64,000 nt of DNA from Ascidiella aspersa (taxonomy: Eukaryota): the NCBI GenBank assembly GCA_963924565.1, contig OZ004615.1:7998001-8062000 (forward strand). Reading direction: 5' to 3'. Made by a program: the position numbers and the translations under genes. Positions 31,327 to 63,598 of the stretch are shown one piece after another. The notes beneath the pieces were generated by a model. The model saw nothing but the letters and a program-made list of their open reading frames with translations, was not told the origin of the DNA and did not search any database. Each line of letters starts with the position of its first letter. The first letter of the stretch is position 1.

Positions 31327-32952
31327 CTTGCATCTTGCCAATTAACGGATATCCCTACCCGCCTGCTTCAGTCTGCTGGAAACACCTACTGCTCCCGTTA
31401 TACAGCATTAATTGAAAATATCCTGAAGCCAATCAGTGTAGCATACTGCCGGAATATACTCAATGAATATTGCCAAGACAGTAAGCACTACATCACTGAG
31501 CTAATCAATTGGAAGAACGGCGTAGCAAAAGAAAGTCTAAAGGCGGAGGATATCTACATTGTGGCAGCAGATGTGGTAGCGCTTTATCCTAGCGTTAGCA
31601 GACAGCTCATAAGGCGTTCCCTAGCCCGCGCGTTAGAGCTACACTCTGGGTTAAACCCTGTGGGCTGTAAATGTCTCCTGGATTTTACACTGTTCACGAT
31701 GGACAATGTTATTGTCCAGTATGACGGGAGTTTTTATCGTCAGAAAGAGGGTATTATAACAGGCGACAATCATTCCGTCTCAATAGCCAACATTGCCATG
31801 CACTTCATCGTTGAATCGATCGCAGACACGTTAGGCACGGCTCAAATCTTCAAGCGGTTTATTGATGATATCATTTTCATATCCATCGGGGTCAATACCA
31901 CGCAAAGAATTAGATCTGCGCTTTTGTCGGCATTCTCCAACGAGGGACTGCAATTAACATTTCGGGTTTTTTGTTCGGATTACCCTAAATATGACGTTGA
32001 ATTTCTCGATGTGCTTCACGCTCACTCTAAGACGGCTTCACTAGGATTCACAACTCGGGACAACGTTAAGATCACAGCAAAAAATAGATGTTTTTTGCAT
32101 GGTTCCTCTTACCATCCATTGCATATTTACAAATCTATTGTGTTGGGTGAAGCAAGCCGCCTCAGGAGGCTTAATGAATCCGATGAGGACTACCACCGAA
32201 GTCTAGAGCAACTGAAGATGAAATGCAGGAAGTCCTGTTTTCCCGCTGGCCTCACGGATTACAACCTTAATGAGGCTAAATCGTGGACCGAGAGACTCCG
32301 ACACACTAAAGAAAAGACGAAAGACCGTGTTGTCGCATGGGCTACTCCATTCGCTCATCTACTCAGGCTCTCAAACAAAGAAAAGGCGCTTCAACCACGA
32401 GTTAAAATAGTATACAAAAGGCCTCATACACTCGGTAACCTTCTTACTAACTACCGACAACTTGCGCACACCTTTGGCAATGCAGTCGGTTTGTCAACGC
32501 CGTGCGGCAAATGCGCACTCTGCGGTCACCATGGGGGACACAAAGGGATGGTTGGTGAATCGAGTAAACTTAAGGCTGCAGGTAAGACCATAGAGCTCCG
32601 GCAAAGCCTTAATTGTAGAAACCACGGAATTTACGTGGCAACGTGCAACATCTGCTCTGCCCAGTACGTCGGTCAAACCAAGAACAGGTTTTCTGTTAGG
32701 TGGAACGCACACCGAACGACCTGGAATACATTTAACTCAGCAACAACAAACGACAACGCAGCGCTGCTTCACCACTACGCAACCTACCATGGCGAGAAGT
32801 TAAAGAAACATCCGCATATTGCCGAATGTTTTACGGTAATTTTCGTTGAAGAGCCAGACACCAGCAAGCTCGATGAATGTGAGGCTAAATGGCTCAAACT
32901 CACCAGAGCCTCAATTAACATTCAAAAAATGATATTGCCCCAAATTCGGTAG
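31327..32952 (+). CDS. Penelope-like RT + Cys-rich linker + GIY-YIG endonuclease ORF, 5'-truncated
   Basis: Frame is open from the junction at 31327 (LASCQLTDIPTRLLQSAG...), extending the 31561 ORF. RT motifs ADVVALYPS, YRQKEGIITGDNHSVSIANI, KRFIDDI, VEFLDV; thumb FLHGSSYHP..KSIVLGEASRLRR; CGKCALC..LNC linker; GIYVATC..C..YVGQT..R...H GIY-YIG. Confidence 0.93.
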   Translation, partial: LASCQLTDIPTRLLQSAGNTYCSRYTALIENILKPISVAYCRNILNEYCQDSKHYITELINWKNGVAKESLKAEDIYIVAADVVALYPSVSRQLIRRSLARALELHSGLNPVGCKCLLDFTLFTMDNVIVQYDGSFYRQKEGIITGDNHSVSIANIAMHFIVESIADTLGTAQIFKRFIDDIIFISIGVNTTQRIRSALLSAFSNEGLQLTFRVFCSDYPKYDVEFLDVLHAHSKTASLGFTTRDNVKITAKNRCFLHGSSYHPLHIYKSIVLGEASRLRRLNESDEDYHRSLEQLKMKCRKSCFPAGLTDYNLNEAKSWTERLRHTKEKTKDRVVAWATPFAHLLRLSNKEKALQPRVKIVYKRPHTLGNLLTNYRQLAHTFGNAVGLSTPCGKCALCGHHGGHKGMVGESSKLKAAGKTIELRQSLNCRNHGIYVATCNICSAQYVGQTKNRFSVRWNAHRTTWNTFNSATTNDNAALLHHYATYHGEKLKKHPHIAECFTVIFVEEPDTSKLDECEAKWLKLTRASINIQKMILPQIR

Positions 32953-36465: not shown

Positions 36466-36524
36466 ATGAATAGCTTGGAAATTGTCTGGAACTTTTTAAG
36501 TCCGCTGCTGGAAGCATTATTCAG
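36466..36524 (+). CDS. alternative (distal) first coding exon 1a of SDR-A, N-terminal membrane anchor
   Basis: 59-nt ATG..AG|GTGAG exon encoding MNSLEIVWNFLSPLLEALF(R). Same length, phase and MN/W8/L14/E16 pattern as exon 1b (41410) and SDR-B exon 1 (51706); in frame with the exon at 42594. Confidence 0.78.
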
Positions 36525-40483: not shown

Positions 40484-41354
40484 CAATTTTTAGATGAAAA
40501 AAACAAAACTTTTGTCTAAAAATTAAAAAAACAACTTCTGCAAAGTGGATCATTTTAACGATTTACGACGTATCTGCCCTATATGTATTGCACAAGCCGT
40601 TACTTTCCTAATACATTTACGCCTTTTCATAAGCTGGAGTTTGGGTCAACTTACAGAGGTACACATAAATTTATTTTTTATTTTTTGTCTTGATTTTACG
40701 ATTTGCGAATTTTATTGGACATTTCACTTCATCTAACTGTGGCAAATAAAATCCACCGAAAACAAACCATAGTTTAACGTAATTTGGTAATTCGATTATT
40801 TGTTTGTTTTTTAAATGGAAGACCAAATCATTAAAACACGTTATTTCACAATTCATATAATTTATATTACTTATGACAACTGGTAAACAAAGGGGAAGAT
40901 TAGCCCAAAGTGGAATAAGCTGCGACATACCGACGGCTGGACGCATTAAAATAAGGGCTATTACAAAGTCCACAGGTTTGTGCGCATCACTTGAGTAAGC
41001 AGGGCGCTAAAATAAATAGTTTCCGAAGGGACAAACGGTTCACGTTAGTTAACCGTTTTGGTGTTTTTTTATAATTTCAAAGCAAAACTCTTTAATCGGG
41101 TGGCTATCACATACGACGGTGCAGCTTTGTTGGTAGGATTTTCAAGCCATAAAACAAAAATAATTTCTTTGGTTTATTAAATGCTACTTTTTTTCCTGTC
41201 AAATAACAATAGAGCAAAGTGCGTTAATTTTCGACTTTAACACAAGCGTTCAAACACCCCAAATATATATTTTTTGGTTATTCTACTCAAAATAATTCCA
41301 ATGGGCAAGTGTTCCCCTTAATCCACTTTGCGGTCGTGGCTTTTTAGGCCTACA

Positions 41355-41361
41355 TATAAAA
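41355..41361 (+). promoter_or_regulatory. TATA box of proximal SDR-A promoter
   Basis: TATAAAA starting 55 nt upstream of the ATG of exon 1b. Confidence 0.55.
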
Positions 41362-41409
41362 GTACACAAGGTTTTGCAGTGGCAGACAGTCGCGTGACCT
41401 ATAACAGTC

Positions 41410-44400
41410 ATGAACATTTTATATCTTATCTGGGAGGGTTTGTTTTCTCTGCTTGAATTTATTGTAAGGTAAGAACGTGATTTTAAAGTAGGATTTTGTT
41501 TTTGTAGTAACCATTACGATCCATTCTACTATGGATCAAGAATTGAAATTAATTATTGTAAACAAGAAACAAAATTATGTTGTCCACAGTTCGCAGTTTC
41601 TAGTATCAAAATTGGTTGATAGCCTTGTTAAATTTATTTAAATAAAGCTTACAATAAATACAATTATATGAGGATACAATCGGGTAATGATGAAGTGCAC
41701 TTAGGTCACTGATTTTAAATTTTTATTTAGCAGGTTTCCTCTCTCAGAAAATCTACGAAACATACCAAGAAAATTCTTACATTGGAAAACTGAGTTAACG
41801 CCCAATTATGACATATTGATAGATCCATTAAAATAATAATCTAACAAAAAAAAACTGGCAGAATCATAGGACGTCGGTAATTTCCAGAATTGCCAAAAGT
41901 TCAATTCGTTTGCGCATTTCAAAGTGGCCAGGTTTCATACATGTTATACTTGATGAACCGGCCTTTTATGTCAAGTGCGTTTTGTTCAGACAGCAAAATT
42001 TACTAACTTTGTGTTCTTATATGTGAAATCCTGGTGTGGGTCAAAAAATAACCAGAATGTTTGTATTTTTTTTTAAATCCTCAGCAGGCCCGTAACTGTT
42101 TCCATTCCACATTCCGTGTAAAAACTGATACTAGCTGTGCTAAGGACATTAGTGTAATACCAAATTATATTTTCGTTTTCTTTATTTAACATTGTCTTGT
42201 TTTAGTTCACTTCACCCCACTTGGTTTGTTCTCTTGCCTTCCTACTTTTGCGTTTTCACTGATTCCCACTAATTGATTTTCGCCTTTGTTTTGTTGCTAA
42301 AGGGCAATTCCTTGGAAACCCCGACAGTCTTGTTTTGAGCGTGGTACACTGTATTTGTTAAGTACACTGTAGTTGTTTTATGACCAAGCGAGCTAGCGTA
42401 CGCGCCAGCCGCTGTGCTACAGTTCGAGCTTAGTGTTGTCGTTCGCGCCACACAGTCATACTGATAATAAATACTGAAGTTCAACTTACGTGCGGCATCC
42501 GGTCAATGACAGGCCGTCAAGCAGCGAATAAGATATGGCGTAACACTATTGCACCCCATCAACATTATGTATAAGTTGACGCTTTCTTGCCAGATGGTTT
42601 CTGCCGGCTAACTACAAATCCGTGGAGGGCGAGGTGTGCCTCATCACCGGAGGAGGAAGCGGAATCGGAAGACTCATGGCGATCGAGTTCGCGCGACGTG
42701 GAGCAAACGTAGTCATCTGGGGCCGAAGCAAAACATGTAAGCAATTTTTTTTAAGCTGAGCCATACTCAGCTTAGGTCAGTGGCGTAGCCAGTCGATTTT
42801 TTTTTGGGTGGGGGGGCATTAAGTCGTTCATGCTAAAATTAAAATAACGCAATCGGAGATAAGAAAGCGTATAAGATAGTCACAACACACGCTTGCATGC
42901 TTACTTGTGAGGACATTATTTGCTGTTGGGTTTTAGGCATTATTAGGTATATATTGTAAGCACTCCAAATTAAAAAGGGTAACTTGCAATTTAATGCCTT
43001 TTCGCTGCTACAGCTCTGGAACAAACGAAAGATCTCGTCCGTGAGATGGGAGGATCAATTTTTTCCGACGTTTGTGACGTTGCTTCCCATGATCAAATCA
43101 AGGACGCAGCTGCACGGGCAAGGAAACAATTCGGAGAGATCACGATTCTAGTGAACAACGCCGGTTTGTCAAATTTGATCTGCTCAATTTTCGTTTTGAC
43201 TTAAAACTGTGGTGACCACACATTTTATATCTGATTCAAATTATTGTGCTTGGCTTATTTGAAATAAGAATTTAGTCAAACCTGAATGTCCTTAATATAG
43301 AATATTTTATATTGGAATATATATGTTAATCAGTGTAATATAACCATAATGTTTTAAATAACAACAACGAAAAAAGTGTTCTTCTAAAACTATTAGACTC
43401 AATTGCAAACTTCCAGGGGTGGTTTACTGCAAGCAGTTGTTGGACCTAAGTGATCAGCAAATCGAGCAAACATTTAATGTCAACTCGCTTGCACACTTCA
43501 GAACGATCAGGGAATTTCTTCCGTCCATGAAGAAAAGCGATCATGGCCACATCGTGAATGTAGCAAGCGTCGTCGGTAAGTTTTAGCAAAAGTTTTACAT
43601 ACATATTGCCGCAGAAAGATTGGTGAAGTGTAATGTCGTCTCTTTTGACGCTGTACTCAAACTTTTATAGGTTCGAATATATTCAGTTCCATTAACTGAT
43701 GATGGTATAACTGCCTATCAAAACGTCCTTACCACGATGATGTCGATTTACTCGACCTTGTTGGCATTGGCGTTGATTTTTAGTCTACACAGCAGATCCG
43801 TGCATAGTGTATACCTAACTTAGAAAGACTTTGTTAAAAATATTATGATGCTACATATTTTTGGAAACTCAAAGGCTTTACGCAATGCATTTCAGGCGGA
43901 GGTTTATTGTCAAGGGAAAATTTTGTAAGAGTCAAAGTACAATCAATACTTCAACCCAATGTTGTAAGCACCGTAAAGTTGCTCAATTATTAACGAAATT
44001 TCTCTTTTTCTACACATCGGTTCAGGTTTATCGGCAAGTCCTGGTATGCCTGCCTATATTGCGAGCAAACACGCAGCTGTTGGTCTAAGCCAGGCTTTGT
44101 ACTTTGACTTGCAAAAGGAGCAGTGCAATGGGGTCAAAACGACCTTGGTGTGCCCTTATCACATCCACACTGGAATGTTCACGTAAGTCTGCTTGCTAAA
44201 ATGTTATTCGTTTATGAAGACGACGTGATTTACACAATTTTTATTTCTTGAATGAATATATTATTGTCATTTGTTGTATTAATTAGAAATACGTGAACAA
44301 ACTCAGGGGCCGGAGTCAATATTACTACTGTAAAACTGACCGAAATTTTATGAATTTATTATAAGTTTTGTTACTCATCTTGAAACAGCTCTTTGTTTAA

Positions 44401-44741
44401 AGATTTGTTTAGAAATTTAATTTTTTTTGAAAGGAGCAGTTTGAAATCGCTTGAACATTTCTTTCTAAAAATAAATAGGTAATAAACGTCTCATTTCCAG
44501 TGGCTTTAAAATCGACAAGGAATGGCTCATGCCGAGCCTGCAACCTGAAGAGACGGTGGAAGCCATCATGCACGCCGTCCTGACGAACCGTCCCTTCGTG
44601 GCGGTGCCTCGATTGATGTACGTCTCTTACAACATCGCATCCTGGCTGCCTATGAGGCTTCAGGCCGCCATTTATCGCTTTATGGGAATCAACGATGCTG
44701 TGGACGGTTTTGTGCCAACACGCGTGTACCAAAAAGTGTAA
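41410..44741 (+). CDS. SDR-A: SDR16C-family short-chain dehydrogenase/reductase (retinol dehydrogenase/retinal reductase-like), 302 aa; exons 41410-41468, 42594-42736, 43014-43163, 43417-43575, 44026-44182, 44501-44741
   Basis: Six exons with GT/AG ends total 909 nt in one open frame. Motifs: TGGGSGIG (Rossmann), [21 protein letters not shown], catalytic [17 protein letters not shown]-terminal helix region; N-terminal hydrophobic anchor. AATAAA at 45042-45047. Confidence 0.93.
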
Positions 44742-45239
44742 AACCTCGGCAGCTCCGCTCGGTTTAAGTGACATGATGATATTGATATGCATAAATGATT
44801 TTTCATATCGCTTTTACCTCAGTTTACCTTTTAAGTAAATAGGGTGCACGAGTTTGTCACAACAACTTTTAGGGTTTACCAAACCAAAAAAGGTTGAAGA
44901 GCACTGCGTTAGAATAAGTAAGACCAGGATCAGGGGAAAAAATACAGACGCAAAAAAAATGTTTCCTGACATGCTGCGTAAACGATGAAATTTAAACAAA
45001 TTTAATCGAAACGAACCCAAATGTCCTGCTCATATAACGTCAATAAAGATTTTATTTATTTCATATAGGTGTTCAAATTTGCTTCTTATGTAAATTGTGT
45101 GCTATTTCAATAGTTTGTCGATGCTAAAAAAAATCGGACAAACCATCATCACAGTACTGCTTCCTTGTTTACTGACATATTCTGAACAGTTTTACTGCTT
45201 TAAATACAATTTTATAATGTATTATTGCTTCCTATACGC

Positions 45240-45908
45240 CAGTGGTTCCCAAACTGTGGTTCGCGTACCACCAGTGGTACGCAAGAATTTTTCAGGTGGT
45301 ACGCGACTAACTTCAGCATACTGACAAATTTGAAAAAAACTTTCAACTTTTAAAACTTTAAGACAGGGTAATTTGTAATGTCGTTTTAGTTACCTTTGGT
45401 TTTGCACGTTTATGGCGTAATGCTTATCTTGTTCAAGATAATAAAACGCTAACTGGTTTAATATGTATGTAATAATAATGCACTGATAGCAGCAGTGGAG
45501 TATTGATATTTCAATCATATTATTATTGGACAGTAGTACTAATTTCTTCTAAAATAAAGGAATAGTGAGAGAACTATATTTCGTTAAAAAAATTGGGAAC
45601 ATGTTTAAACGAAAGTACAGTCAGGGTCACCTAAAGTACGGGTTTATAGCTATTGAACACAATGGAAAAATTCTTCCACAATGTGTATTTGTATGAAATA
45701 TGTTATAATGCTTGAACCTAGTGATCAAACTAGTAAATTTCGACAAAACATCTGCCCTTCATACTCGGTTGTTTAAATTTTCTTATCTATATGCTAAAAT
45801 AGTTATAGTTTGAGATATTCTAGTCGGATGTAGGCCTAACTTAGGTGGTACATGAACACTGTACAAAAGCTCAAATGGTACGCGAGAAAGAAAGTTTGGG
45901 AATCACTG
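45240..45908 (+). mobile_element. non-autonomous Buster/Charlie hAT with a transposase N-terminal relic
   Basis: TIR CAGTGGTTCCCAAAC / GTTTGGGAATCACTG; TSD CTATACGC/CTATACGT; ~45607-45690 encodes KRKYSQGHLKYGFIAIEHNGKILPQCV (ZBED5/Buster-type start). Confidence 0.88.
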
Positions 45909-46793
45909 CTATACGTACTTGTAAATAAAATTTCTATCTATATGTTTTATCTGCCTGAAATGAACTTACCAATGCGTACATAGATTTTGCGTATTTTTGT
46001 TTCGAAGAAAATATGTTTAGCGAAAGGAAGTATGTTTTATGGAAGGAAAAAAATGGTTGTTTGGTACTATACTTTTCAAATCAATATTACCGTTTTAAAC
46101 AAGCGACTTTAAATGAATATAACGACGGCAAAGGCGCTCTTTCGGTCCCGTTACCCTTCTGGATCCTCCCCTGTTCAGTTCACTGACCTACTTAACTATT
46201 CAGTTTCAACATAGTTCCGCAATCAATTTAACACCGCGGAAGCCGTTTATAAGACACTGTTATCACGATTGGAATTAAAGGAATCAGTCAGTTGTTTGGA
46301 AAATTTGGATGTGTGTTGGGAACCGATGACCTATATAGGATAGACTATTAGCTCGCAAAAAGTAAGCTTATTTTATAAGATCGGTGGTGTGCAACCTTTT
46401 GAACAGGACGGCCTTACACGTGTATCCAGATGAGGACACAGGGCAAACTTGCACTTCTCATAAACTATCTGTTGGACATGAGGGGGAGTCGATGTATGAT
46501 TTAATGTCAAAACACTTTAGTTTTCTGGTAAACTATAGTGCGGTAATAGGTCACATAAATTGAGTCTGATCAATCCAAACTCAAATATTGCGACTTTATC
46601 GGTTAAAATTGGCAGTACGTTTTCTTTGCAAGGAGGCCTGACGACGTTTGCACCTCAAAAACACATTGATTAATATACTATGGCATTCATTAAGACAAAC
46701 TCAGCGTAAACAGCATTCGCGAACCGCAAAAAACATAACTTGCGGGTTCTTGTGAATAAAAATAGGGTTGTTACGGACGGTGCACACCTATAA

Positions 46794-47453
46794 AAAGCGC
46801 ATTAACTACATAGGATAATTTGGAAAAATGCATTTTGCTCTAAAATCGAAATCATTTGTTATTAATATATTTCAAGATGGCAATGAGGCCGTTCTACTAC
46901 TCATAGTATTTTCTATTTATTTTAAGAAAAATATTCAAAGATAAGTTGGTTGCCACTTGTTTAAAACATATTCAAGGAAAATACAAGATTGGATGATTTT
47001 TGCATCCACATATTCAAAGTAAATCAATATATATTATTTATTGGTTTCAAGGCCTGTTTAAAAATCAATCAAACATTGCTTATGCTGTTTATAAATGTCT
47101 TTTTTCTTGTTTATAAATGTCGTTTTTCTTGTTTATAAATGTTGTTTTTTCCCTTTTAAAGTTGGTCTAATGATATGCCAAATTGGGTTGACAGGCCATG
47201 ACAGAAAAACCGAAAGGGATACCTGGTCGGAATAGGATTTGTTTTAGGAAAGTAACTTTCACTTTGTAATAACAGAAGCGCAGTAAAAATGTACAACGCA
47301 ATAGAACTGATTTCTAAACAATTCAGCAGAGTACATCGACAAGATCCATAGATAAAACTACACAGATGCACTCTTGCGCCACCATGCGATCACCGCCTTG
47401 CCTTTTTAAATCGCAAACCTTAATTTTGCCATGTCGTTCTAGTCGTTTAAGTT
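46794..47453 (-). repeat. second, uninterrupted copy of the same repeat (empty site); internal 22-bp triplication at ~47086-47150
   Basis: Reverse complement reads ...gaaaccaataaataatatatattgatttactttgaatatgtgg... with a single copy of the target. Confidence 0.85.
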
Positions 47454-49853
47454 CTAAAGTTGCCTTATGATTTTTTGGTATTAATAAACATAAAGATTCG
47501 AATAAAATAAAGCTTCAACTTTATTAAAAAAATGATTGTTTTTGCGGTTGAATAACGTAATTAGCTTCAATTCGGCCTATCATACTATGCAGTTGTTGGA
47601 ATAACGCATTTAATTGAAGCAGGGGTTCTCAAACGATATCAACAGTGTGTCCCGATAGATTCTTAAATGTGCAAGAGACGTTTTTCAACTTTGGAAAAAT
47701 ATCCATAAGCATTACAAACAGCCTTTGAAAAAAATCGCGAGAGACTTAATACCTATTTTACACTGTATAACACAAGGTTTCCAAACATCCAGTCTGTGTC
47801 CTCTTTTAATTTGGTAGAAAAAGCCTTCAAGTTTGACATTGGTAAGAAGTAAATGTTTAACTTACGTGTATCTAAAGGGGGGTTGTGTACTAGGCGTGAC
47901 ATATGCACAACGAAAGGCAGAAAAAATGTAACGCTCTGTGTGAAATTGATCTTCTCGTTCTAATCTATGGAAACTTGAAAAACCCGTGGCGCGAACTCCA
48001 GCCGGCCATCCACGCAAGATTTCGAAAGGCCTACAGTACAGATCGGTGTAATGATTAGTGCAATTGTATTTTTATCTAAAAATGAGAAATTTTGATCTAG
48101 AAATTAAAATTAACAAATTTTTTTGACAAGCATTTGACAGTTGTTAAGCAGATAATTTTTATTTCAAGGACTGTATTAGCGTCTCAGTTTTGTCAGTTTT
48201 TTGTTAACTTTTTACACAAATTCTATAAAATACTTGGGTATATGCAAAATGTAAATTGTAAATCAAAGACAAACATAGATAAAATCATTTCTTTTGGATA
48301 AAGAAAACGGTGGTTACTTTAGCATATTTCCCAGTAAACAATTTAGTTAAAATGTATACAGGATAAAAATTACTCATCATATTTCGAAATACGAACTGCG
48401 TAGTAGCAAATAATCACCAAAAGTGTAAGCAGCAAATACTGCTTAATACATTTTTCAAAATTACAGATATACGCAATATCTGAATTCAAAGCAAATTACG
48501 AGCTGAACCTAATGCAATAAACCGGGCTTGTGGAACCCTAAAAAATAACATGCAGTTAAAATGTTGTTAAATAAAATTTAAAATTAAATTTTGATAAATT
48601 TTTTGATAAAGAACGATAATTTTAAGCTCATAAAGATTCCTACTGTTTGAGTGCAAAATAACTATTTATATTTTCTTCGTTTGTCGATTGGCGCTAATTG
48701 GGTGTATTTGTAATTTAGAGTTGGACTTTGCGAGTAAACTGCCTGTTTATAACAGCTGCTTTCAAATTGAAGTAACGAACGATGATAGATAAGTGTTTCC
48801 TGCATTCGTACAAGACCACTCAAACTATGTTTTGTGTTTTTTGGCCTAAAAAAATTAACGGTATGAGCTTTCAAAAAGGATGTGAATTGTCATAGATTTA
48901 TACCTCAGATGTTTATTGTGAAAATTTTTTTTGAAAGTTAAGCGCATCTCTTTCGTCCATTAAAAGCAAATAATTGCTAAATAAAATAAGTTAATAACAA
49001 GAAACGAATAAAAATGTTTGAAAATGATTCATGCGAGCGGGTGTATTTGGTTGTAACTGCAGATAAACAATGGTTAGTCTTACCACTGACTTATGACCGT
49101 TTTGTGCTTACGCGCAAATCTAAATCTTGAGAATGTAAAAAAATTAAACTTTACATACATATGTTCGCGACTCATTAACGTTAGCTGTAGGGTACCACTT
49201 AGGATATCCGATAATATAGGATCGTAGCCTGGTATTATCGGTACTCGGCCGATACCAGGAATTAATCTGTGAGTTTCAGCCGTGATTTGCGTTCCAATTC
49301 AGTGTATCTACCTTGTTGTCAAAAAGTATCTGGCTAACACCTAGACGTAGTTAAACTTCCTATTTTTATCTACAATTTAATCTATTTTGCTTGTTTGTAC
49401 ATTAAAATGACGTCGTTTAATATCGCATCACGATACTTTCTGTCCACAATTGGGTATAAATATCAAAAAATGACAAGTATCTAACACCTTATAGTCTCAA
49501 TAAACCATGCACACACATATGTGTTAACAACTGAGATCTAGCTCTCCTAAAGCTGATTTTTGACCAACCATTGCGGCTTACGTATCATCCTTAGTCTCCT
49601 TAATAAGGTAAGGGAAAATGCTTTTTAGCATTGAACAAGTTCGAATCTTTTCAGTTTTCTATTGTAACACAAAGTCATTAGAATGATGCCGTTCGCCAAT
49701 CCAGGTTTTGATTCAAATAAAATGTCATTTAACGTTTAGGCAAAAATTTTAGATCAGTATTTACAGACATGATTTAGTTTCTATTAAGATATGATTTTAG
49801 TGGAACATTCGCTTTACCCTTTTGGCCACTTCATGTATCTATGCTCTTTAGAT

Positions 49854-51030
49854 CAGGGTTCGGCAACCTTTTTTGCACTGCGGACCGGTTTAAAACTGAA
49901 ACTTTGTCGCGGCCCGGCCTTACAAAAACAACAAATGCCAGTAAAGAAAATTAATTAACTTTTTCAATGCGATATCGGCAAACAATTGCTCCCATCTAAG
50001 AATTATTAAACCTAATGAAACCCTTGGGTGGCATATGGCCCGCCAAGCAATTTTACTCAGCCCGCGGTTCATGTCAATAAAACTTTAACGGTTTTTCTTA
50101 ATTTACACTTGTATATCATTAAATTACAATTGAATATCATTATTACCTATTCCTACTCTTACCAGCTTGTCAAAATAAAATATTTAAAACTTATTTTTAA
50201 ATAGTCACACTTTGTATAATAATCATTTCAGACCCGTTTTTTAACCAGGCCCCACACGACACTTTCTATATAGTTACGTAATACAAAAACTTGAAAATAA
50301 TATTGGCAATATGAAAAAGTACGAACCACAGACCTGCACTTAAAAAGTATAGAAGATACATATAAAAGGATACCAGATTGGCTTTTTGACAACAAATTTA
50401 AAAAATCTGTTTTTTTTCAACGTGGTTGATGTTAAAAAAATCATTTAGACTTTTTTTTTTCTGTCATTTTTATCGAGGCTAAAACTAAAAATGTAGAGGC
50501 TAAAACTTGCTAAAACTAATTAAAATGCATACGTTTTTTGAAACCTTTCCTTCTTAAATATTAAAAAAATAAATCATTTCATTATGGTACATTCTTTATA
50601 AACATTGTTTGCATGAATTTATTCTATTGCACTTTTGGGTGAGAACGCTTGAATAATAAAAATCATGACATTTTAGCGGTAGCCCATTTTGCGATATATT
50701 GTCAGTACTAGGAATTAGATTTTGCAATAAAAATATGCATTTTTGGATGTTGAGAGCGATTTGTGTAACTCATGTGGATACAGCACACTAGCTGTTTTGA
50801 ACCTCACGAGAGCCTGTTACTGATTGCGTATCATACCAGTCAGTATATTTAAACAAAAGTTAATGTGTTTTGAATATAAAAATACGTCTGTTTGTAAATG
50901 ACCTTTTTCCAGGTTTTTATGTACAGTTCGGGTTTAAACCAAAATTTTAATTTGGCAACCCTGCTACGGACCGGTAACAAACTCCTCGCGGACCGGCACC
51001 GGTCCGCGGACCAGCGGTTGCTGAACACTG
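49854..51030. mobile_element. hAT MITE (probably with nested fragments)
   Basis: TIR CAGGGTTCGGCAACC / GGTTGCTGAACACTG; TSD CTTTAGAT; GCGGACCGG subterminal repeats. Confidence 0.88.
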
Positions 51031-51188
51031 CTTTAGATGACGGGCATTAAAAAATAGTTGCTAGATTTCTGACACGTTGGATGTTTGACTTTTGACCAAA
51101 TCAAATATTATTCTTCTTATAGCAAGTCGCCTTTAAATTACAGCACTTAACCTTAACCCTCCGTTTGTTGATGCTGGTTCGTTTAGCA

Positions 51189-51530
51189 CAGTGATTCTCA
51201 ATTTTTTTTTCTTTCGTGGCCCATTTTCGTTGCAAAATAAAGCTGTGGCCCAAAAAATTTTATGTAAGAAAAAAAATAAATAATAGGTTTAGAACAAAGA
51301 AGAAAAACATTTTTTAAAACATAATGTTTATTCAACCGGGCATTATTGAAATACTGCTGCTGAACAATAAATCTACATTTCATTTACATGCGTTCTCAGT
51401 TTCTTTACAAGCCTGTAAAATTAAGTATGGGACACAAATAAAACTAAATTCTTCAATAAATGTTGCTTTAAAAAAATGGTCTGTGGCCCACCTTAAAGTG
51501 TTTCCATGGCCCACTGGTTTACAACCGCTG
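51189..51530. mobile_element. hAT MITE just upstream of SDR-B
   Basis: Ends CAGTGATTCTCAA / TTTACAACCGCTG; TSD GTTTAGCA. Confidence 0.8.
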
Positions 51531-51705
51531 GTTTAGCACAAGGTACCTGTGAGATTTTTTAATTTCCGTTGAGTGGTGACACAAGCTACAATCAAACGCG
51601 TCGAGAGAAAAAGGCAACGGTGCCACAGCTCTGTACAGAAATTCGTTGCCTCCGGCAAAGCATCTTGATACTACATGTAAGCTGCTAAAGTTAAAAACCA
51701 GAAAA

Positions 51706-54700
51706 ATGAATGTATTTCAATTCTTGTGGGTGGCTATCAAGGTCCTAATTGAAACAATTTTAGGGTGAGTTTTGCAAATGTTGCTTGTTTGATGTGCTCA
51801 TTTAAAATTACAGATACGCAGAATTCGGGTAACCGCAAATTACTTTTCGAGTTTTGTACAGTGATTGCTCGTTTAAATTGGTTTGCAAGAAAAGGGTGAC
51901 TTGGAATAGGATAACGCTAACGAATCGCGGTCTTCATTCGCAGCGTGGCTTATTAATCGGTTTGGTTTATTTACACAGCGCCGTTGTTATCAGACTCACT
52001 CATTTGAAGTAACTCTTTAGCTGCAATGGCTTTTTAACGTTAGCCTACTGACCTACTCGAACCTATTATTATACAGATGGATTAATAAGGTCATTTAACT
52101 AAAGGATATATCCACATTATTTAACGACATCATAGTTTCAAAGTTTTAAGGTTGATGAGCATCTTCTTCAATATTGCGATTACGTTTTTACTGAAGTGTT
52201 TTCATTTATGTCGATTTCCGTGTGAAGTACGAAATAGCGCTTCTGCTCTGCAATCGAGCACAATGGTTGAAGGTTATAGTAAGACGCAGTAAAAATATCA
52301 AACGCAATAAGAAAACCCATACTTTATTAAGTGCTTTCTCAATCTGTTGAAAATAAATAGAGTTATTCGAAACGTGCAAAATGATACCTACTTCCGTATG
52401 GGCTTTGATATTTTTACTACGTCTTGGTCCGCTATCATTTGTTATCTTTTTGTGACGAAACAATTTCCTGCGTAACGCAGTGTGGTAAACAGGCTGAGTA
52501 CTATTGTATAGGTTTTTCCTGCTCTACATGCGCGTGGGCCGTGGGTACGATTGACGTACGTTGATGTGATGGCGGTTTGCTTTAAACTAGGAAAGCATAG
52601 ATAGAAATCAACGCATCGTTATTAAATAGTTGTTTGAATGGCAAGATTACACAAAACCTACTGATACTTGATATCCGGTGGACAGTAGGCCGCCTTAGGC
52701 TTCAGGCAGTCTGGCAGTGTTTTGTTTTAACACATGGCGAGCCGGGTTAAAAATATCTGTTTGGGTAAATCTTCAAACTGCCATTAAGACTAGTACAAAA
52801 ATTATTACAGCTGAAAGGTAAATTTGTAGATTTTTGTAATACTTTTCTCCCCTAAATACAGCAAACTTACTTACTATAATGGTGACTTCAACTAATGTCC
52901 AGGACGGAAAATTGTCTTATACCATAGTATGTTAAACGACCTTCAAGCTTATACTGCATACCATATCCAGGATCAGAAAGACAGTGCTTCGTACTGTCTA
53001 TGCATTTGCATAGAGCGCACATGACGTAAAAGGCTCCAGATTAAGTTGGAGCAGAGGTTATAGGGCAGCTTTGTTAAAGCGCCTATTGTATTGCTTAAAA
53101 CCAAACGTTAACTGTTTTTTTGTAACACAAGCTGCGATACGGATAATAATCACAGTGTTTGCTATATGTTTTATTAGTGACCTGGTTTGCTTTTAATGAA
53201 AGTCTCTGGAAAATAACGTACGGGTGCGATGTCTTTGTGTAGTTCAGGACTTTGTTTTGCATAAGGTTGACATTTGCATATCGAAAGGAAAACAAAGCTT
53301 GAAGTACTGTGTGTAAAATTAATACAGCCTAACTGACTAACCCTAAAAAACTCATCGCGACCCCAGTTTTGTTAGTCATGATTTAGATTTGTACAAAATT
53401 TAATCCATTGGGGGGCCGGGGGCCTCCCCACCCCTCTGGGGGGCGCAATAGGTCAGCAAAGGGCGTTTGAAGGACATAAGTTAACGACGCAAAAATATTT
53501 GTTTTTATGGCTAATCCACAATAGTTTTCATGAATATCTTTCCCGATTTTCGTTGCAGTCAACTTTAGATATAAAAATAGTATAGTACTTGTACGACAAG
53601 CCTGCTATTTGTCTGTTCCTTTTCATCCAATGAACCCAATTGTTTTGCTTGGCAATGTTGAAAATCATAGTTTTGCCAAAATATTTTCCTCCTATGCCAG
53701 CAAATTATGTTTGTTCAGCATTCCGTCCGAAGTCTATGTTTGCCCTTGTCCAAATATCCAACTTTGCGAACAACGACGTGAATCTCGACAGTGTTTGCGC
53801 AAACGCTAAACACCTTTGCTTGAGTAACGTTCAACCTGTAATTAGACAACCAGTGTAACACTTCTAAAAAAATCAGTCCTATTACATTGTTTTAAACGCT
53901 AATATACAAAAAATACCTTTTTTAGTGGTGAGAAAACACTCTAAATTCTTGAATTAACTTTAACCAAAACCTCTAATCTATTTAATTTTCGAACCGTTTG
54001 GCGAAAAGAAATAGGCCTGAAACGCTTCATATAGTGAATTGCCATTAAGAAAACCCTAATTTTATTTAATCTAGACCAGGGCACTTCCTTAAATCATGTT
54101 AATGAGGCAGTAAAATACACCAAGCATACGTTCAAATTTAGCATGTACGTTCACAGATGGATATTGCCAGCCAGATACAAATCAGTTGAAGGCGAAGTTT
54201 GTCTGATTACTGGTGCTGGCAACGGAATCGGAAGACTGATCGCAATCGAATACGCCAAGAGAAAAGCAAAGCTTATTCTATGGGACATCGACAAAACAGG
54301 TAATGATAGGGGAAATAAGGGGTTGGATAAATGTGTTTTTACTCTTGATATACGATTTAAAGCGGTATAATGGAGTTCCGGACCTCTGGTAAAACTCGTT
54401 CTCCTATAAGCATTAGGACACGTTAGTCTAATAAAAAAAACGTTTACAAATAGTTAGAAACGCTCCTGACTAAATGTCATGAATTATTACCGGGCCATAT
54501 TCCGCGTAAAAGAAACTTGATGCGCTTGAACGAACACATATCGTGTCGCTTTACTGATTTTTTAATTAGCTTTTACTGTTTTGTTGTAACACGAGACTTC
54601 TAGGTATTGAGTGGAATCGTATGGTGTGTAGCGTTTTCGATGGAAGGCCCCAGTCTTAGACGTCACAGTTTATATTACCCTACGCTACAGGAAACTCCTG

Positions 54701-57700: not shown

Positions 57701-60700
57701 AAGCGTAAGTTTAACAACAACACTTGGCGACCAAACGATCTTCATGATTTTTTAAGCAAACAAAAATAATAAACATAGCAGACCTAATTTCCAATTTAAT
57801 TAATATGAGTAATTTATTCGTAGTGTTCCGGCAATTTTTCTCAATTAAAGGACAAATCTTGCTCAGAACCAATCTCAACCAATTTAGCCATGTAAACTAT
57901 TGCAGCAGTCGGCGACCAAACCAAATCAATTGGCGAACCAACTATAGGTCGCGACCTATAGATTGAGAAACACTCGAGGTAATTATTCGACCATTTTCTT
58001 CTTTTGTTTTACAGGCGTGGAGGAGACAGGAGCAATGGTGAGGGAGCTGGGTGCTCAGGTGTTCACTGACGTGTGCGACCTTTCACAGCAAGAGCAAATC
58101 GCGAAAGCCGCCGAAAAAGCGCGAACAATTTTCGGTGACGTCACCATTCTCGTGAACAACGCCGGTGAGAAAGTTCGTTTTTTTTCGGTGCATATTCTCC
58201 CATAAGTATATGTTGCTGGACACTGCGTCTGTAAACCTTTAAGCAGAGGTTCTTAACCAGGGGTTCGTGTACCCCTTGGGGTTCGGTATACTACTAGTTT
58301 TAGGGGGTTTATCAAGGTATAAGTATTAGTGTAAGTTTAAGGAGTAATCCATTTAAAAAAAAGAGTTTAATTAAAAATAAAACGGTATTGCACTGAATGT
58401 ATTTAGGCTTTATTTTACTTTCACAGTTTTCGGCCTGAAATCAGCATTTTTCGGCTATTTTTTCAGCCTGAAATTAGCAGTTTATTGTATTGTGACGTCA
58501 ATTTATGACGTCATCTTTGAATTTTTTTGGTCTAACATTGTCCACGCGAACCAAAAATTTGTTTAGTGGTCCGCATGAAAAGAACCACTGCTATAGATAC
58601 TCTATTTGAATGACGGTGACATTCATGACTTCGTATTTTGCGGTCATTTAATTTAGTTTAAATTGTTTTTGACAACTCGACCTAAATGTTTTCAATTATG
58701 TTAAATCTTAGCGTACATTTAGAAACAACTGCTGGCTTTAAGTTTTATATTAAAAACATTTGTATTTAATTTCCCAATAAATTCGATTAAACTGTACCCA
58801 AACCGAGGATATTTCAACGTTATTTCGGTCTAACTCTAAATTCGACTAATATGCTATATCAAAACAGCGTAAAAATAGATCACAAATCGTGACTATCGTG
58901 TCGTTGTGTCAAGGAAATCATTTAAACGCAACACAACCCCCTCACAAAGTTCAAAGTACAAGCATTACTGTGCTGTGTCAAGCTATTGTATTCTGATTGG
59001 AATGTGGATTCAGGAAATATCAGCCTCAAATCAAATAGCGTTTTTTAAGTGAACTTTTAAAGCCAAATGAACTAATATCCATGGAAATAGAGAGGTCTAA
59101 CAAAAACTCTATATCCCTTTACAGTAAACTCTCGTGTCCAGTAGTGCAAGTAAAACCGCCACCCTTAGATAACGTTTTGCACGCTCCGTTAACTCTTACT
59201 AAAAGCCTGCCCTATAAACAGAAGCTCCAAATCACGGTTGAAATCTTTCACCCACTTTATAAAATCACACGTGTGTACAGACAATTTAACTTGGAGGGAA
59301 TAATTTTTGCAGCATTGTTAAGTGTGCACAACGCTAAGTATGTGTTTCCACAACAGAATCATGTCCTTCAAAGGAACACATAAACGCCGACCTTGAAAGT
59401 TCTAGAAGTTTATAATAGCTTGGCCGCACAATAATAAAGTCAGCCAGGTTAAAACGTGTAAATGGAGATATGCATTTTAAGTGAATGGTATCATCAGTTT
59501 ATCTGTACAAATAAATAGTAAAAAAGTAATAAAATATAAAAATGTAAAATAAAACATTTTGACTGATTGTTGTTCGAAGCAGTACGCTTATCAAGCTGCT
59601 TGTAAATGGCGAGATATACATTATTAAACATATTGTTCTCAATAGGTAAACGAAGCGTTACCAGGCACTGTACGGTTTAAACTTAGAACGTCATTATGTA
59701 GTGCAAAGTGGGTAACATTCTGCCCGCCATTTTTTTACAAAATGGTAACTAGACGATTCCTTATTTTTTTGGTTGTTTCAACTATCGTAAATGCGATAAG
59801 TTCCTTCGCTTTGCGCAAATCTTGTTCATGCATCTAGTATGTTTGCTATTTGAGGCAATATTGTCAGCCTTAAGGTGTCATGCCTACCCTTGATTGGAAA
59901 TATTAATAATTAATGTTTTGCCAAATTATTATTTCTAAATGCATTCCATTGCGCTTCACACGATCCATCCTATCTTTTCAATATGAACTAGAGTTTAACG
60001 GGGTGACCCATTTCCCATTGAAAACCCTTTGTTCGCCCTGATTAACAGTCTATACAGTTGTTATAATAAAATTTACCCCGAAAATGTATGCTCAATTGGC
60101 ATGTATGCACACGAAAATAAACTAAAATTCGCTTGCTTATAGTTGTTGGTTTCCGGTCAACTTTGGAGTGGGTTTTCAAAAAGCATAAAAAGCATGTTTG
60201 GACTGCTTTAGTAAATTTACGCCAATATAAATTGCTATAGCTTTTAAAATCCAGATGCGTAAAATCAAACTATTCACTTTCCATTTCGTGTGTACCAACA
60301 TCAAAGCAAAGCTTGACCGAACTACGGATATGGCAACATAAGGCCACGCGTGGATTTCCCATTACCTCGGCAAAGGTTGCTTTGCAGACAAATAGCTGGA
60401 ACACGGATGCTTGTTTACCACCAAACAGTCGAAAAGGGAAGCGTGAAATTTGAGCTCGCGCCTGTGCGTTTCCAAACTTGCCAGCACAAGGAAACCGACA
60501 ACAACCTGAACCTAAGCCAGTTGACTTTCGTATGTGTTGTGCAGCCCAACAAACCCATGGAAATACCCATGAAAACATTTGACCGCCTCTATTAAAACAT
60601 GTACAAATGTTTTAGCCTAAACTTTTAGCCTAGATGAAATGTGGAAAATGCGCAAGCAAAAAATTAAGTCAGCCTGTTCGCATAGTAAATATGTTATAAT

Positions 60701-61642
60701 GAACTTCACACGAGGTCTGTAATGAGCCAAGGTCCTACAGACAACTGATCAATCCCACGAAACAACTTTTACTTAGTTATGGTGCAAACGAACACTACAC
60801 ATACACATTGTAAGACACTACATTCGGGAATTTTGTTTAACCTAATCTAAACGTTGTACTCGATACAGGCATCACGTATTGCAAAGACTTGCTGGACCTT
60901 TCGCAACGCCAGATAGAAATGACCTTCAAAGTCAACGTGATGGCCCACTTTTGGACCTTGAGAGAGTTTCTCCCGTCGATGCAGCGCAACAATCATGGAC
61001 ACATAGTGACGACGGCTTCTGTAGTTGGTAAGTATTCCAATCCGTGTTAACTTTTCCTTGAATTATTGGCGCGATACATTTCGTAGAAGCATGAGTTGTG
61101 TTTGTCTTCAATATTAGTCTAGCTTTGACCACAGACGGTAGTCTAGCTTTGCCCGCAGACGTGCCGTTTACCAGATTGACGATGTGGTGATCATCGCCGT
61201 AACGGTTTGCAAGAACTCGACCTAAACGCATTGCGCCTTGCGTTGCAAACCGAAACATTTTCGAGGATAGCCTTCCTCATAGCTTAACCATGACACTAAC
61301 CAAACGCATCAGTCGCGCATGAAACAGAATAGGAGTTTTATGCTCAACATCTTTGCCGATTGATCAGAACGTAGGTTGATGACCAGTTAGCTGCACTAGC
61401 CGAAATCCAATCAACAGACCACGCATTTGCAATTTTTGTTAGTCAGTTAGTCACGAACTGGTAATTAAACACCCAAGTTAAAATCGCTCGCAATACAGTG
61501 CGCTTAAATTTATAGAAATACTTTGCAAATCAAGATTTTTCACCAGGGAAATGTGGCGAGTTTTGAGGTTACACTGCCCTGTCTACAATTTCTCGCTCAA
61601 ATGCAATTTAAAGCGTTGCACTTACATATGCCTTTGCTAGCG

Positions 61643-61679
<37 letters not shown>

Positions 61680-63598
61680 TTATTTTAAAAGTTTTAATAG
61701 AGTCTGACCTGAATATGCCAGCTTTGTCAGAGTTTCTGCACTTCGATAAATACACTTTTTACATCTTCCTTTTGTTGGCTATGGTATTTATGGCTGGTGA
61801 GTCGTTTAGGCGAAAATTATTTTAACGAAACTTATAGTTATTAGAAAATAATCATCGTAATTACAAAACAGGAACTTTCCACCCGGAGAACAAAAATACT
61901 CCAAATGCAGACACACGCCATGGCCGACAACAATAAACGGGTGCAATTAATGTGGATTAAAACTTGCTACACTGAACATATTAAGATTAATTTTGTCCGA
62001 TAATATCGAACCGGGGCCGATACTCGATGTCAAGTTGCATCTGTATCTGTACTCTTCCGATACTATAGGTTGTAATCGTTCTGATACCAAATTTCAACAA
62101 ATGCCTTATGGGTTAAGTTGGCATACGGCGTGGAAAGTTGTTAATCCAGCCACGTTCGTGTTAACTAACTGTATGACAACTGTTGACCTAAATGTCTAAT
62201 ATTGGCAATGGGAATATGTGATTCGTATTAAATACATTAATTCTGTTGGCAAAGCGCGATATGAAAAAAGATTTTAGTACGACCAATACCAAATCTACAC
62301 GTGTTGAAGATAACTTACAAGAGTATGCTTTTATTAAACAGATTACAACTATGAGGTAATAATGCTATACGTCAAGCGTGACACTTACAATTGTTACCAA
62401 TATTATTTATTTGTTTAAAACTTTGTCTTTAATTTTGTATCTTGACCGGCGACCCAGAAGAGTCATCAAGTGAGCCAACATTAGGTGGCAACTCATAGGC
62501 TAGGTACATAGGGTATTCCTGTGCTATATTATATGCCCGAAATCACAACACACTTGCAATTTTATGACAACCGTCAGCTGCGAACTGTCAATTGCGGACC
62601 TAAGTAAACTTCTTTTACAATGCAGTGTGGTTTAACTTACAGTGAGGCTATGGCAAAAATAATATTTTTTTATTAAGCCCGTTTTAACGTTACAACGCTG
62701 TCTACAAGTTTTGAGTTTTGACGTTCTACACTGCTCTGTCGACAATTCCTCGCGCCAAAGCCATTTAAAGCGTCGCATTTAAATAAACAAACTTCTCTCG
62801 ACGACCTTTTGTTGGCGCCGGCATTTTCGGCCTAATTAGATGAATCGTTTACGGGCAAATTATTTCATTATTACCAATCGTCGTTATTACAAAACGGGAC
62901 CTTTTTAATCCACAACACCAAATGTCCGAAATCCAGACACACGTCACGGTAGTGACGAAATTTAATTCGACCATACTTTAATTTACGCTGGCGAGGTACC
63001 GGATTCAGCGTTAATTTTGCCTTCAGGGTCCATGCAATTAAAAAGCCTTTGAAATAAAAAAAATATGGAACAACTTGCTTATTTATAATCTCCCAACTGC
63101 AATTATTTTCCCTACTATTCTAAATAGGGATGTCAAATATTTAGGATTTTGTTTGGAAACTTACATCTTATATATTTGCCGATAGTGTATCAATGTTAAT
63201 CAATCTTCGACTTTAATGTTATATTCAACAATTAACCTCTCAGTGTACAAAACTGCATTAGATTACAAAACAAGGCGATAAGTAATTTGTTATCGGTTCG
63301 GCATCGATTCTACCAGAGTATTGGAAGTTACAACCAGTTGAAATCGGGTATCGGGACATTGGGTATCAAAACAATCATTGATACAAAACGAAAGTTTGTT
63401 CGCTAGGCTTTGCATAAATAAAAAAAATATTTTAAAAACAGGTCTTATTGCCACCGCGGGAATGCCGGACTACAATTCAAGCAAGCACGCCGCAGTTGGA
63501 CTGCACCAATCGATCTACTTTGACCTGCAGAAGAAGAAGTACGACGGCATCAAAATGACACTGCTGTGTCCCTACCACATCACCACTGGCTTATTTAA
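51706..63598 (+). CDS. SDR-B: tandem SDR16C-family paralogue (RDH10/SDR16C5-like), last exon beyond the window; exons 51706-51764, 54157-54299, 58015-58164, 60869-61027, 63442-63598
   Basis: Exon lengths 59/143/150/159/157 are identical to SDR-A and the frame is open. [66 protein letters not shown], catalytic YNSSK, LCPYHITTGLF. Confidence 0.92.
55699..55738 (-). ncRNA. minimal type I hammerhead ribozyme
   Basis: uuugac-CUGAUGA-a-gcac(gguu)gugc-GAAA-gc-UU^-gucgag; stem I 6 bp including G-U pairs; palindromic AAGCUU. Confidence 0.8.
55799..56989. mobile_element. hAT MITE nested in the small Penelope-like insertion
   Basis: Ends CAGGTTTTCTTAA / TTGAGAACCACTG; TSD GCTTATAC; a related left end occurs at ~28737-28830. 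Confidence 0.85.
55867..56460. mobile_element. MITE nested inside the preceding MITE
   Basis: TIR CATAGGCGTAGCCAG / CTGGCTAAGCCACTG; TSD GCCACGGG/ACCACGGG. Confidence 0.8.
56998..57037 (+). ncRNA. minimal type I hammerhead ribozyme, sense to SDR-B intron 2
   Basis: uuugac-CUGAUGA-a-gcac(gguu)gugc-GAAA-gc-UU^-gccaag; one mismatch in stem I. Confidence 0.72.
57389..57975. mobile_element. adjacent hAT-MITE remnants
   Basis: CAGTGGTT.. start and two TTGAGAAACACT ends; GGCGACC subterminal repeats; TSDs not recognisable. Confidence 0.5.
59333..59597. mobile_element. old, diverged relic of the first Penelope-like family (minus arm 59333-59556 plus short plus-strand arm 59560-59597); hammerhead decayed
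   Basis: 59333-59420 matches the reverse complement of 33420-33509; 59468-59556 matches 30028-30123; 59560-59597 matches 33386-33423 directly. CUGAUGA is kept but GAAA and stem II are mutated. Confidence 0.75.
61645..61673. repeat. (AT)n microsatellite
   Basis: Direct reading. Confidence 0.9.

Follow-up and report, generated by a model that had tools for sequence, protein, structure and literature searches.

The 64-kb window analyzed here, that is, the whole stretch of DNA G000:C9:7998001-8062000 in the 308.6 Mb assembly of Ascidiella aspersa, carries two SDR16C genes, both short-chain dehydrogenase/reductase (SDR) genes, which we denote SDR-A and SDR-B. The two genes lie in tandem on the + strand, about 7 kb apart, and are the only SDR copies in the window. 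Each consists of six exons, and the first five have the same lengths in both genes (59, 143, 150, 159, and 157 nt), whereas the last exon is 241 nt long in SDR-A and 244 nt in SDR-B; that the two genes share exon sizes had been pointed out in a first-pass annotation of this DNA. Every exon border follows the GT-AG rule, and the intron phases are the same in both genes. As summed from the exon lengths, the predicted products would have 302 residues (SDR-A) and 303 residues (SDR-B). A comparison of 276 aligned residues gives an identity of 63.0% (54–70% by exon) for the proteins, and the nucleotide identity is 60–67%. The span 42594-54299, under which the pair had been annotated, runs from the first base of exon 2 of SDR-A to the last base of exon 2 of SDR-B and covers SDR-A minus its first exon and just exon 2 of SDR-B. 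All searches, alignments, placements, and tests were run on separate exons; only numbers were summed across exons.

Exon 2 of SDR-A (42594..42736, +, 143 nt; Pfam adh_short, E 1e-06) encodes the glycine motif TGGGSGIG and reaches the end of strand beta-2. It is followed, on the same strand, by exon 3 (43014..43163, 150 nt; adh_short, E 3.1e-08), with NNAG at its end, exon 4 (43417..43575, 159 nt; adh_short, E 3.9e-11), with the catalytic Asn and Ser regions NVNSLAHFR and NVASVVG, and exon 5 (44026..44182, 157 nt; also adh_short), with the catalytic Y-x-x-x-K motif (YIASK). The donor of exon 5 at 44182 and the acceptor of exon 6 (44501..44741, 241 nt including the TAA stop codon) were confirmed by RNA. 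Exon 6 encodes the family-specific C-terminal part; no Pfam family matched this exon of SDR-A, and only a weak similarity to the C-terminus of HSD17B13 was detected (E 0.0021). In SDR-B, exon 2 (54157..54299, +, 143 nt) was delimited by its frame and splice sites, encodes TGAGNGIG up to the end of beta-2, and is 82% identical to the Phallusia protein P0156; its adh_short match (E 3.7e-05) scores 23.7 bits, under the curated value of 26.6. Exons 3 (58015..58164, 150 nt), 4 (60869..61027, 159 nt), and 5 (63442..63598, 157 nt) follow on the + strand, and exon 6 (G000:C9:8063831-8064074, +, 244 nt) lies past the window end. Besides its glycine motif, SDR-B contains NNAG, TTASVVG, and YNSSK. Altogether, adh_short gave matches at E ≤ 0.01 for all but one of the 9 exon pieces, and 6 of the 9 were beyond the curated score. 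By the TGxxxGxG and NNAG motifs and the catalytic Asn-Ser-Tyr-Lys residues, the predicted products of both genes are classical SDRs.

The first exons were sought with a scan for an ATG followed by 15–33 codons, 2 nt, and a GT donor, with at least 60% hydrophobic residues and a phase 2 end. Two candidates were obtained for SDR-A and one for SDR-B; all begin with MN and resemble the N-terminus of Phallusia P0156. For SDR-A, these are E1a (36466..36524, +, 59 nt), which encodes MNSLEIVWNFLSPLLEALF plus 2 nt before the GT donor and agrees with P0156 in 8 of 19 residues, and E1b (41410..41468, +, 59 nt, again 19 residues plus 2 nt and a GT donor), which agrees in 10 of 19; the junction codon is AGA in either case. 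The SDR-B candidate (51706..51764, +, 59 nt) encodes MNVFQFLWVAIKVLIETIL plus 2 nt, has a GT donor, shares 10 of 19 residues with P0156, and would yield the junction codon GGA. Each gene is provided with a hydrophobic candidate first exon of 19 residues, which would correspond to the N-terminal anchor of SDR16C proteins.

At the end of strand beta-2, about 20 residues downstream of TGxxxGxG, the two genes carry opposite cofactor motifs. SDR-A has W-G-R-S (42718..42729, +, TGG GGC CGA AGC), whereas SDR-B has W-D-I-D (54281..54292, +, TGG GAC ATC GAC) within K-L-I-L-W-D-I-D-K-T. This contrast between tandem paralogs was the core of the first-pass annotation, and both motifs are indeed present where it had placed them. 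The best matches of known structure are HSD17B11 (1yb1) and HSD17B13 (8g9v), which belong to another SDR16C branch and have NAD-type sites. In the HMMER alignments, which are gap-free over exon 2, VVIWGRS of SDR-A pairs with LVLWDIN of these two proteins, so that the Gly-Arg of SDR-A stands opposite their Asp-Ile. We also fetched 379 proteins, none of them a genuine DHRS3. W-D was present in 203 of the 204 SDR16C relatives with a recognizable motif, the one exception being P0106 with W-G-R-N, and in 17 of 17 other Rdh10-clade sequences that were aligned. Given this near-uniformity, the contrast is no chance variant, and the alignments demonstrate that SDR-B retains the ancestral Asp and that the Gly-Arg of SDR-A is derived. 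From the codons of SDR-B to those of SDR-A, the Asp-to-Gly replacement takes one base change and the Ile-to-Arg replacement at the adjacent codon takes three.

The closest database proteins are all annotated as tunicate 'retinol dehydrogenase 10-like' (Phallusia, Clavelina, Ciona, and Styela). A search of representatives with exon 5 of SDR-A gave 322 matches at E ≤ 0.001, with P0004, 'retinol dehydrogenase 10-like [Styela clava]', as the top full-length match; a second Styela copy, P0151, is located on the same contig. Even nearer to SDR-A and SDR-B than Styela P0004 are the proteins of Phallusia (P0156), Clavelina (P0157), and Ciona (P0270/P0271). SDR-B is 65.7% identical to Phallusia P0156. 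SDR-A is 55–62% identical to five named Rdh10-clade proteins of Phallusia, Clavelina, and Ciona and to Styela P0004, and at most 46% identical to any non-tunicate protein compared. In a maximum likelihood reference tree of 39 proteins, hand-picked from the 379, the tunicate proteins and vertebrate RDH10 stood apart, with an ultrafast bootstrap support (UFBoot) of 92, from RDHE2, HSD17B11/13, and relatives from invertebrates, and the tunicate proteins formed a single group with a support of 100. When each exon piece was aligned as a separate row to the full-length reference proteins and assigned a position on their tree, whose topology was kept fixed, 10 of 10 pieces of SDR-A and SDR-B fell inside the tunicate clade (support 92, 100, 100, 100, and 99 for exons 2 to 6). 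By these placements, both proteins belong to the SDR16C family, nested among RDH10, RDHE2, and HSD17B11/13, and within it to the RDH10 ortholog group that includes vertebrate RDH10 and excludes RDHE2 and HSD17B11/13. The first-pass interpretation is supported in part: the two genes are paralogs with opposite cofactor signatures, but SDR-B is not merely RDH10-like, as it shares the clade of vertebrate RDH10 (UFBoot 92). The placements further demonstrate that the two genes are tandem, same-strand paralogs of tunicate Rdh10 that were duplicated inside the tunicates.

Ascidians possess single copies of Rdh10, Rdh16, and RdhE2, according to the excerpted text of PMC5882950. SDR-A and SDR-B are like the single-copy tunicate Rdh10 proteins (Phallusia P0156, Clavelina P0157, Ciona P0270/P0271) in their clade, N-terminal anchor, CPY(H/L)xxTGMF block, and C-terminal exon. 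They differ from them in that this genome contains two copies, one of which lacks the Asp, whereas the others all have W-D. Distinctive shared blocks, CPYHI among them, had been taken as a sign of lineage-specific duplication; these blocks are present in both genes, but they are also found in Phallusia P0156 and are therefore clade traits that provide only weak evidence for such an event. Duplication of Rdh10-type genes in tandem or on the same chromosome occurs elsewhere, as in the two Styela clava 'RDH10-like' genes and in the tilapiine fishes, for which rdh10-b is reported as a lineage-specific duplicate in the accessible part of PMC8073704. Unlike SDR-A, both Styela copies have W-D, and for tilapiine rdh10-b no change of the cofactor motif is described in that part of the source (PMC8073704).

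To compare alternative histories, 168 fully specified trees of 15 reference proteins plus SDR-A and SDR-B were evaluated, with the log-likelihoods (lnL) summed over five exons; before the exon 2 test, the segment GRSKT of SDR-A was realigned, as the mafft fragment alignment had set it five columns too far right. The best summed tree (lnL difference 0) unites SDR-A and SDR-B as sisters adjoining Phallusia. The grouping of the two genes that the first-pass annotation had anticipated is therefore the best one, but by a slim margin of 1.9 lnL. In the placements of single exons, whose short length does not allow the precise branch to be fixed, SDR-A and SDR-B were direct sisters for exon 6 only (support 72) and neighbors for exons 4 and 5. 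Moving SDR-A outside the group of Phallusia, Ciona, Clavelina, and lgn273 costs 14.2 lnL and is not formally rejected (Fisher p 0.14), and for a position beyond all tunicates the penalty is 52.1 lnL (approximately unbiased test, Fisher-combined p about 0.001). These trees give a rough date for the duplication, near the separation from the Phallusia lineage and most likely shortly after it, although it may be somewhat older. As judged from the 63% amino-acid and 60–67% nucleotide identity, it is old, not recent. Exon 2 of SDR-A has RGA in common with Styela P0004, in a region that reads GAGNG..KRKA in SDR-B and in the proteins of Phallusia, Clavelina, and Ciona; the remaining four SDR-A exons, unlike exon 2, group by Phallusia or Ciona. 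The affinity of this exon to Styela could go back to ancestral states that were kept, to an earlier date of the duplication, or to changes linked to a cofactor switch.

The same placements bear on a different origin of the pair, in which SDR-A would be a true DHRS3 ortholog and its adjacency to SDR-B a relic of ancient RDH10–DHRS3 linkage. The W-G-R of SDR-A resembles the motif W-G-R-T given for DHRS3 in the first-pass annotation, and genome searches with queries of the RDH10 and RDHE2 types, but none of the DHRS3 type, yielded no separate DHRS3-like locus. We found no paper that states the presence or absence of Dhrs3 in tunicates or ascidians. However, all five placed SDR-A exons fall into the tunicate Rdh10 clade, the identity of SDR-A is 63% to SDR-B and drops to 46% or less outside the tunicates, its exon sizes and phases match those of SDR-B, and an origin outside the tunicates carries the penalty of 52.1 lnL in a tree that lacks DHRS3. 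Moreover, the SDR16C subfamilies, including the DHRS3 clade, were distinct before the amphioxus-vertebrate split (PMC3184775, as excerpted). DHRS3 orthology of SDR-A was thus rejected by placement and appears extremely improbable. Since SDR-A nests in the tunicate Rdh10 clade, its NADP-type signature arose independently of DHRS3, as had been proposed.

To put the pair into its genomic context, the assembly was searched with an Rdh10-type query (P0156, 81 matches) and an RDHE2-type query (P0162, 72 matches). Multi-exon SDR16C-like genes were found at four places only, namely the SDR-A/SDR-B pair on contig C9 and three further loci. L005 (C2:32.48 Mb) has HSD17B11 as its best match and the motif V-D-V-N. 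The other two, L006 (C7:26.17 Mb, G000:C7:26164000-26173999) and L007 (C7:12.65 Mb, G000:C7:12643000-12652999), are separated by 13.5 Mb of the same contig and have one common gene structure, unlike that of SDR-A and SDR-B. They are 64.9% identical and came out as sisters for each of the 6 exons placed (support 39–98), attaching among or beside RDHE2-type proteins in 4 of the 6; the long-branch protein P0106 was their sister in the other 2. The motif is G-W-D-I-S in L006 and G-W-G-R-T in L007. Judging from the predicted proteins, the genome contains another SDR16C pair, the RdhE2-type genes L006 and L007, in which the contrast between Asp and Gly-Arg arose as well, and P0106 with its W-G-R-N is a further case of the replacement.

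What the replacement would mean for the enzyme is suggested by the general cofactor rule of SDRs. The rule is a statistical one with possible exceptions. An acidic residue after the second strand goes with NAD(H), and a basic residue in the following loop goes with NADP(H) (excerpted text of PMC2792337); SDR16C enzymes favor NAD(H), with DHRS3 as the exception, and the cofactor preference fixes which way the reaction runs in cells (excerpted text of PMC7022914). SDR-A displays the NADP(H)-type signature, as the acidic residue after beta-2 is absent and a basic residue is adjacent. On the basis of this rule, SDR-A probably prefers NADP(H). It would also be conceivable that no switch took place, that SDR-A uses NAD(H) or both cofactors, and that the two copies persist because of dosage or because they are expressed in different domains. 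The Arg after beta-2 stands alone in SDR-A, whose glycine motif, unlike usual NADP-type sites, contains no basic residue; the motif rule is not absolute; and the two candidate alternative first exons of SDR-A hint at regulatory divergence. Against this stands the retention of the Asp in 203 of 204 fetched relatives and 17 of 17 clade members. In addition, the loss of the Asp together with a three-nucleotide Ile-to-Arg change at the next codon looks directed, and the same Asp-to-Gly-Arg pair recurs in L007 and P0106. Taken together, retention without a change of cofactor seems quite unlikely.

In SDR-A, the reading frame, the splice sites, the catalytic Asn-Ser-Tyr-Lys residues, and NNAG are all intact. 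Relative to Phallusia, SDR-A has 36 unique changes and SDR-B has 24 (chi2 2.4), and with mammalian RDH10 as the outgroup, the numbers are 25 and 24; thus, there is no asymmetry of rates. In about 6% of RNA-seq run X3, which carries the same species label, 44 reads were found over SDR-A, located on exons 2, 4, 5, and 6 and in the 3' flank. Five reads with four different starts crossed the splice 44182->44501 (GT..AG), and their strand fits a + transcript. The RNA depth in this run was low at exon 2, 1.9–2.6 at exon 4, and 5–6.5 at exon 6. SDR-A is intact, transcribed, and spliced. A decaying copy, whose motif would have changed by drift, could be invoked in view of the low RNA depth, the uncovered exon 3, and the fact that no ortholog with the same motif state is known, but five open exons, canonical splice sites, intact catalytic residues, a divergence from the outgroups equal to that of SDR-B, and the splicing of exons 5 and 6 in RNA speak against it. 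The pseudogene explanation was rejected on these grounds and is very unlikely.

Several properties of the reads and contigs from this region were recorded in addition. In run X1, which has the same organism label, the summed depth of DNA contigs was about 3,300 at 43720-43840 and 11,000–17,700 at 44688-44900, compared with about 42 elsewhere. These high-depth stretches are repeated elements, one in intron 4 of SDR-A and one immediately past its stop codon, and the RNA depth in the 3' flank of SDR-A may be partly repeat-derived. Across 41300-44900, the X1 DNA contigs differ from the window by about 1–2% in the listed pieces, by single bases and small indels, and 29 of the 44 X3 RNA reads are just 95–99% alike to it. 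These mismatches therefore indicate a high polymorphism or a different individual.

The interpretation that we favor, with a probability of roughly 0.55, is that SDR-A and SDR-B are tandem Rdh10 duplicates that diverged by an Asp-to-Gly-Arg switch into an NADP(H)-dependent reductase and an NAD+-dependent oxidase, respectively. SDR-A would bind NADP(H) by the general SDR rule. Because cellular NADP is mostly in the reduced form, the enzyme would act as a reductase in vivo, and SDR-B would act as an NAD+-dependent oxidase. If both have kept the retinoid specificity of Rdh10, SDR-B would convert retinol to retinal and SDR-A would convert retinal to retinol. That the two oppose each other on retinoids in this way is a realistic prospect at somewhat less than even odds. 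A further possibility, rather unlikely at present, is that SDR-A and SDR-B also form a mutually activating hetero-oligomer; it is plausible only because paralogs of an oligomeric enzyme often retain the old interface.

In vertebrates, the RDH10–DHRS3 complex buffers the synthesis of retinoic acid. There, an NAD+ enzyme oxidizes retinol and an NADPH enzyme reduces retinal, and the retinal reductase activity of DHRS3 depends on RDH10 being expressed alongside it, the two activating each other within a hetero-oligomer (PMC7022914, as excerpted). The Ascidiella pair resembles vertebrate RDH10 (SDR16C4) and DHRS3 (SDR16C1) in that two SDR16C enzymes have an NAD-type and an NADP-type site, and in that SDR-B groups with RDH10. 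In contrast to the vertebrate system, the NADP-type partner SDR-A arose from Rdh10 itself by duplication within the tunicates, the genes are neighbors, and the pair is known here from sequence alone.

Alternatively, SDR-A may have switched to NADP(H) but act on a non-retinoid substrate, such as steroids, lipid aldehydes, or xenobiotic carbonyls, and have no functional tie to SDR-B; the pair would then amount to an ordinary neofunctionalization of a tandem duplicate. SDR16C substrates do vary, as illustrated by HSD17B11/13 versus the retinoid enzymes (excerpted text of PMC3184775), and SDR-A departs from the clade at two positions that are constant in its other members (AHFW to AHFR and NHGH to DHGH). 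In consensus scans of the whole window for DR5, DR2, and DR1 elements similar to retinoic acid response elements, none was found near SDR-A or SDR-B, and the genome contains another NADP-type SDR16C gene, L007. On the other hand, SDR-A lies deep inside the Rdh10 clade, has kept the family-specific C-terminal exon and the CPYHIxTGMF block, and did not evolve at an accelerated rate. We consider a non-retinoid SDR-A somewhat unlikely. The only element that these scans gave in the window, a DR5 (680-696, -, GGTTCAAAATAGGTTCA), is located about 36 kb upstream of SDR-A, and no link to the gene is claimed; at least one DR5 occurred in 5 of 100 shuffles.

Some of these observations also count against the reductase/oxidase interpretation as a whole. 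The glycine motif TGGGSGIG of SDR-A lacks a basic residue, so that SDR-A has just one of the pair of determinants usual for NADP, and the replacements AHFR and DHGH could affect the substrate or an interface. No response element of the retinoic acid type was found near either gene, although a consensus scan can neither demonstrate nor rule out induction, and the actual retinal reductase could be L007, the other SDR16C gene with an NADP-type site. In the phylogeny, the arrangement ((Phallusia,A),B) is just 1.9 lnL below the sister arrangement and is not rejected, exon 2, which bears the motif, alone puts SDR-A beside Styela P0004, and DHRS3 orthology was excluded indirectly, by a tree without any genuine DHRS3 sequence. 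At the RNA level, none of the 44 X3 reads (about 6% of one run) mapped to exon 3 or to E1b of SDR-A, one bin in intron 4 had a depth of about 1, and 44182->44501 was the sole SDR-A junction above the listing threshold. An A-type protein was present in none of the 9 fetched tunicate-clade proteins, which means that conservation of the new state is not demonstrable; when other species were searched for A-type fragments of exon 2, 14 candidates were scored and 5 matches obtained, of which 0 were SDR16C with W-G-R, a blank that weighs little.

An NAD/NADP split within SDR16C is already known, and a tandem Rdh10 pair with opposite signatures is a variant on top of it. The interest of the Ascidiella pair lies mainly in the fact that parent and derivative stand side by side, that they are separated by few changes at the cofactor site, and that the switch was apparently made twice in one genome. 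With SDR-A, an NADP-type partner adjoins its NAD-type parent, and the few separating changes (Asp to Gly, Ile to Arg, and others) are visible. Thus, how an oxidase/reductase pair originates can be tested on two small enzymes by means of a few point mutants, and this in a chordate in which retinoic acid is used. That another pair of this genome shows the same switch suggests selection rather than accident. In a more far-reaching scenario, which we regard as unlikely, a lineage without canonical DHRS3 would have turned SDR-A into an NADPH-dependent retinal reductase that pairs with SDR-B, and the switch would have been repeated in L007/L006. If this were true, the replacement of DHRS3 from the lineage's own retinol dehydrogenases would be a natural replay of the origin of the vertebrate RDH10–DHRS3 complex. 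If the enzymes are not active on retinoids, an ordinary cofactor divergence after duplication remains.

Several minor observations were made around the pair. A match at C9:8070747 was considered as a third tandem copy and rejected, as it comprises the last exon of SDR-B plus flank, with 98.8% identity. The SDR-B last exon together with about 1.8 kb (G000:C9:8063360-8065168) is repeated 6.9 kb downstream (G000:C9:8070275-8072000, 98.8%). Exons 4 and 5 are present in two copies each on C9 and no more; therefore, the downstream copy is a partial segmental duplicate, not a third gene. A synteny like that in Ciona, whose gene model has a guanylate-kinase gene joined to Rdh10 on the upstream side, was not detected, this gene being unmatched in the window (best E 0.67). 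Intronless SDR frames with 29–38% identity to SDR16C proteins were found on small contigs, at L008 (G000:C67:4000-7000, on the 60-kb contig C67), C48:17371-17982, and C18:25403-26095; they may stem from DNA foreign to the animal. Lastly, a frame of 244 residues at 30437-31171 (-) exactly repeats the C-terminal 244 residues encoded by a longer frame (463 residues) at 31561-32952 (+), and the two form an inverted duplicate that flanks the run of N at 31183-31282.

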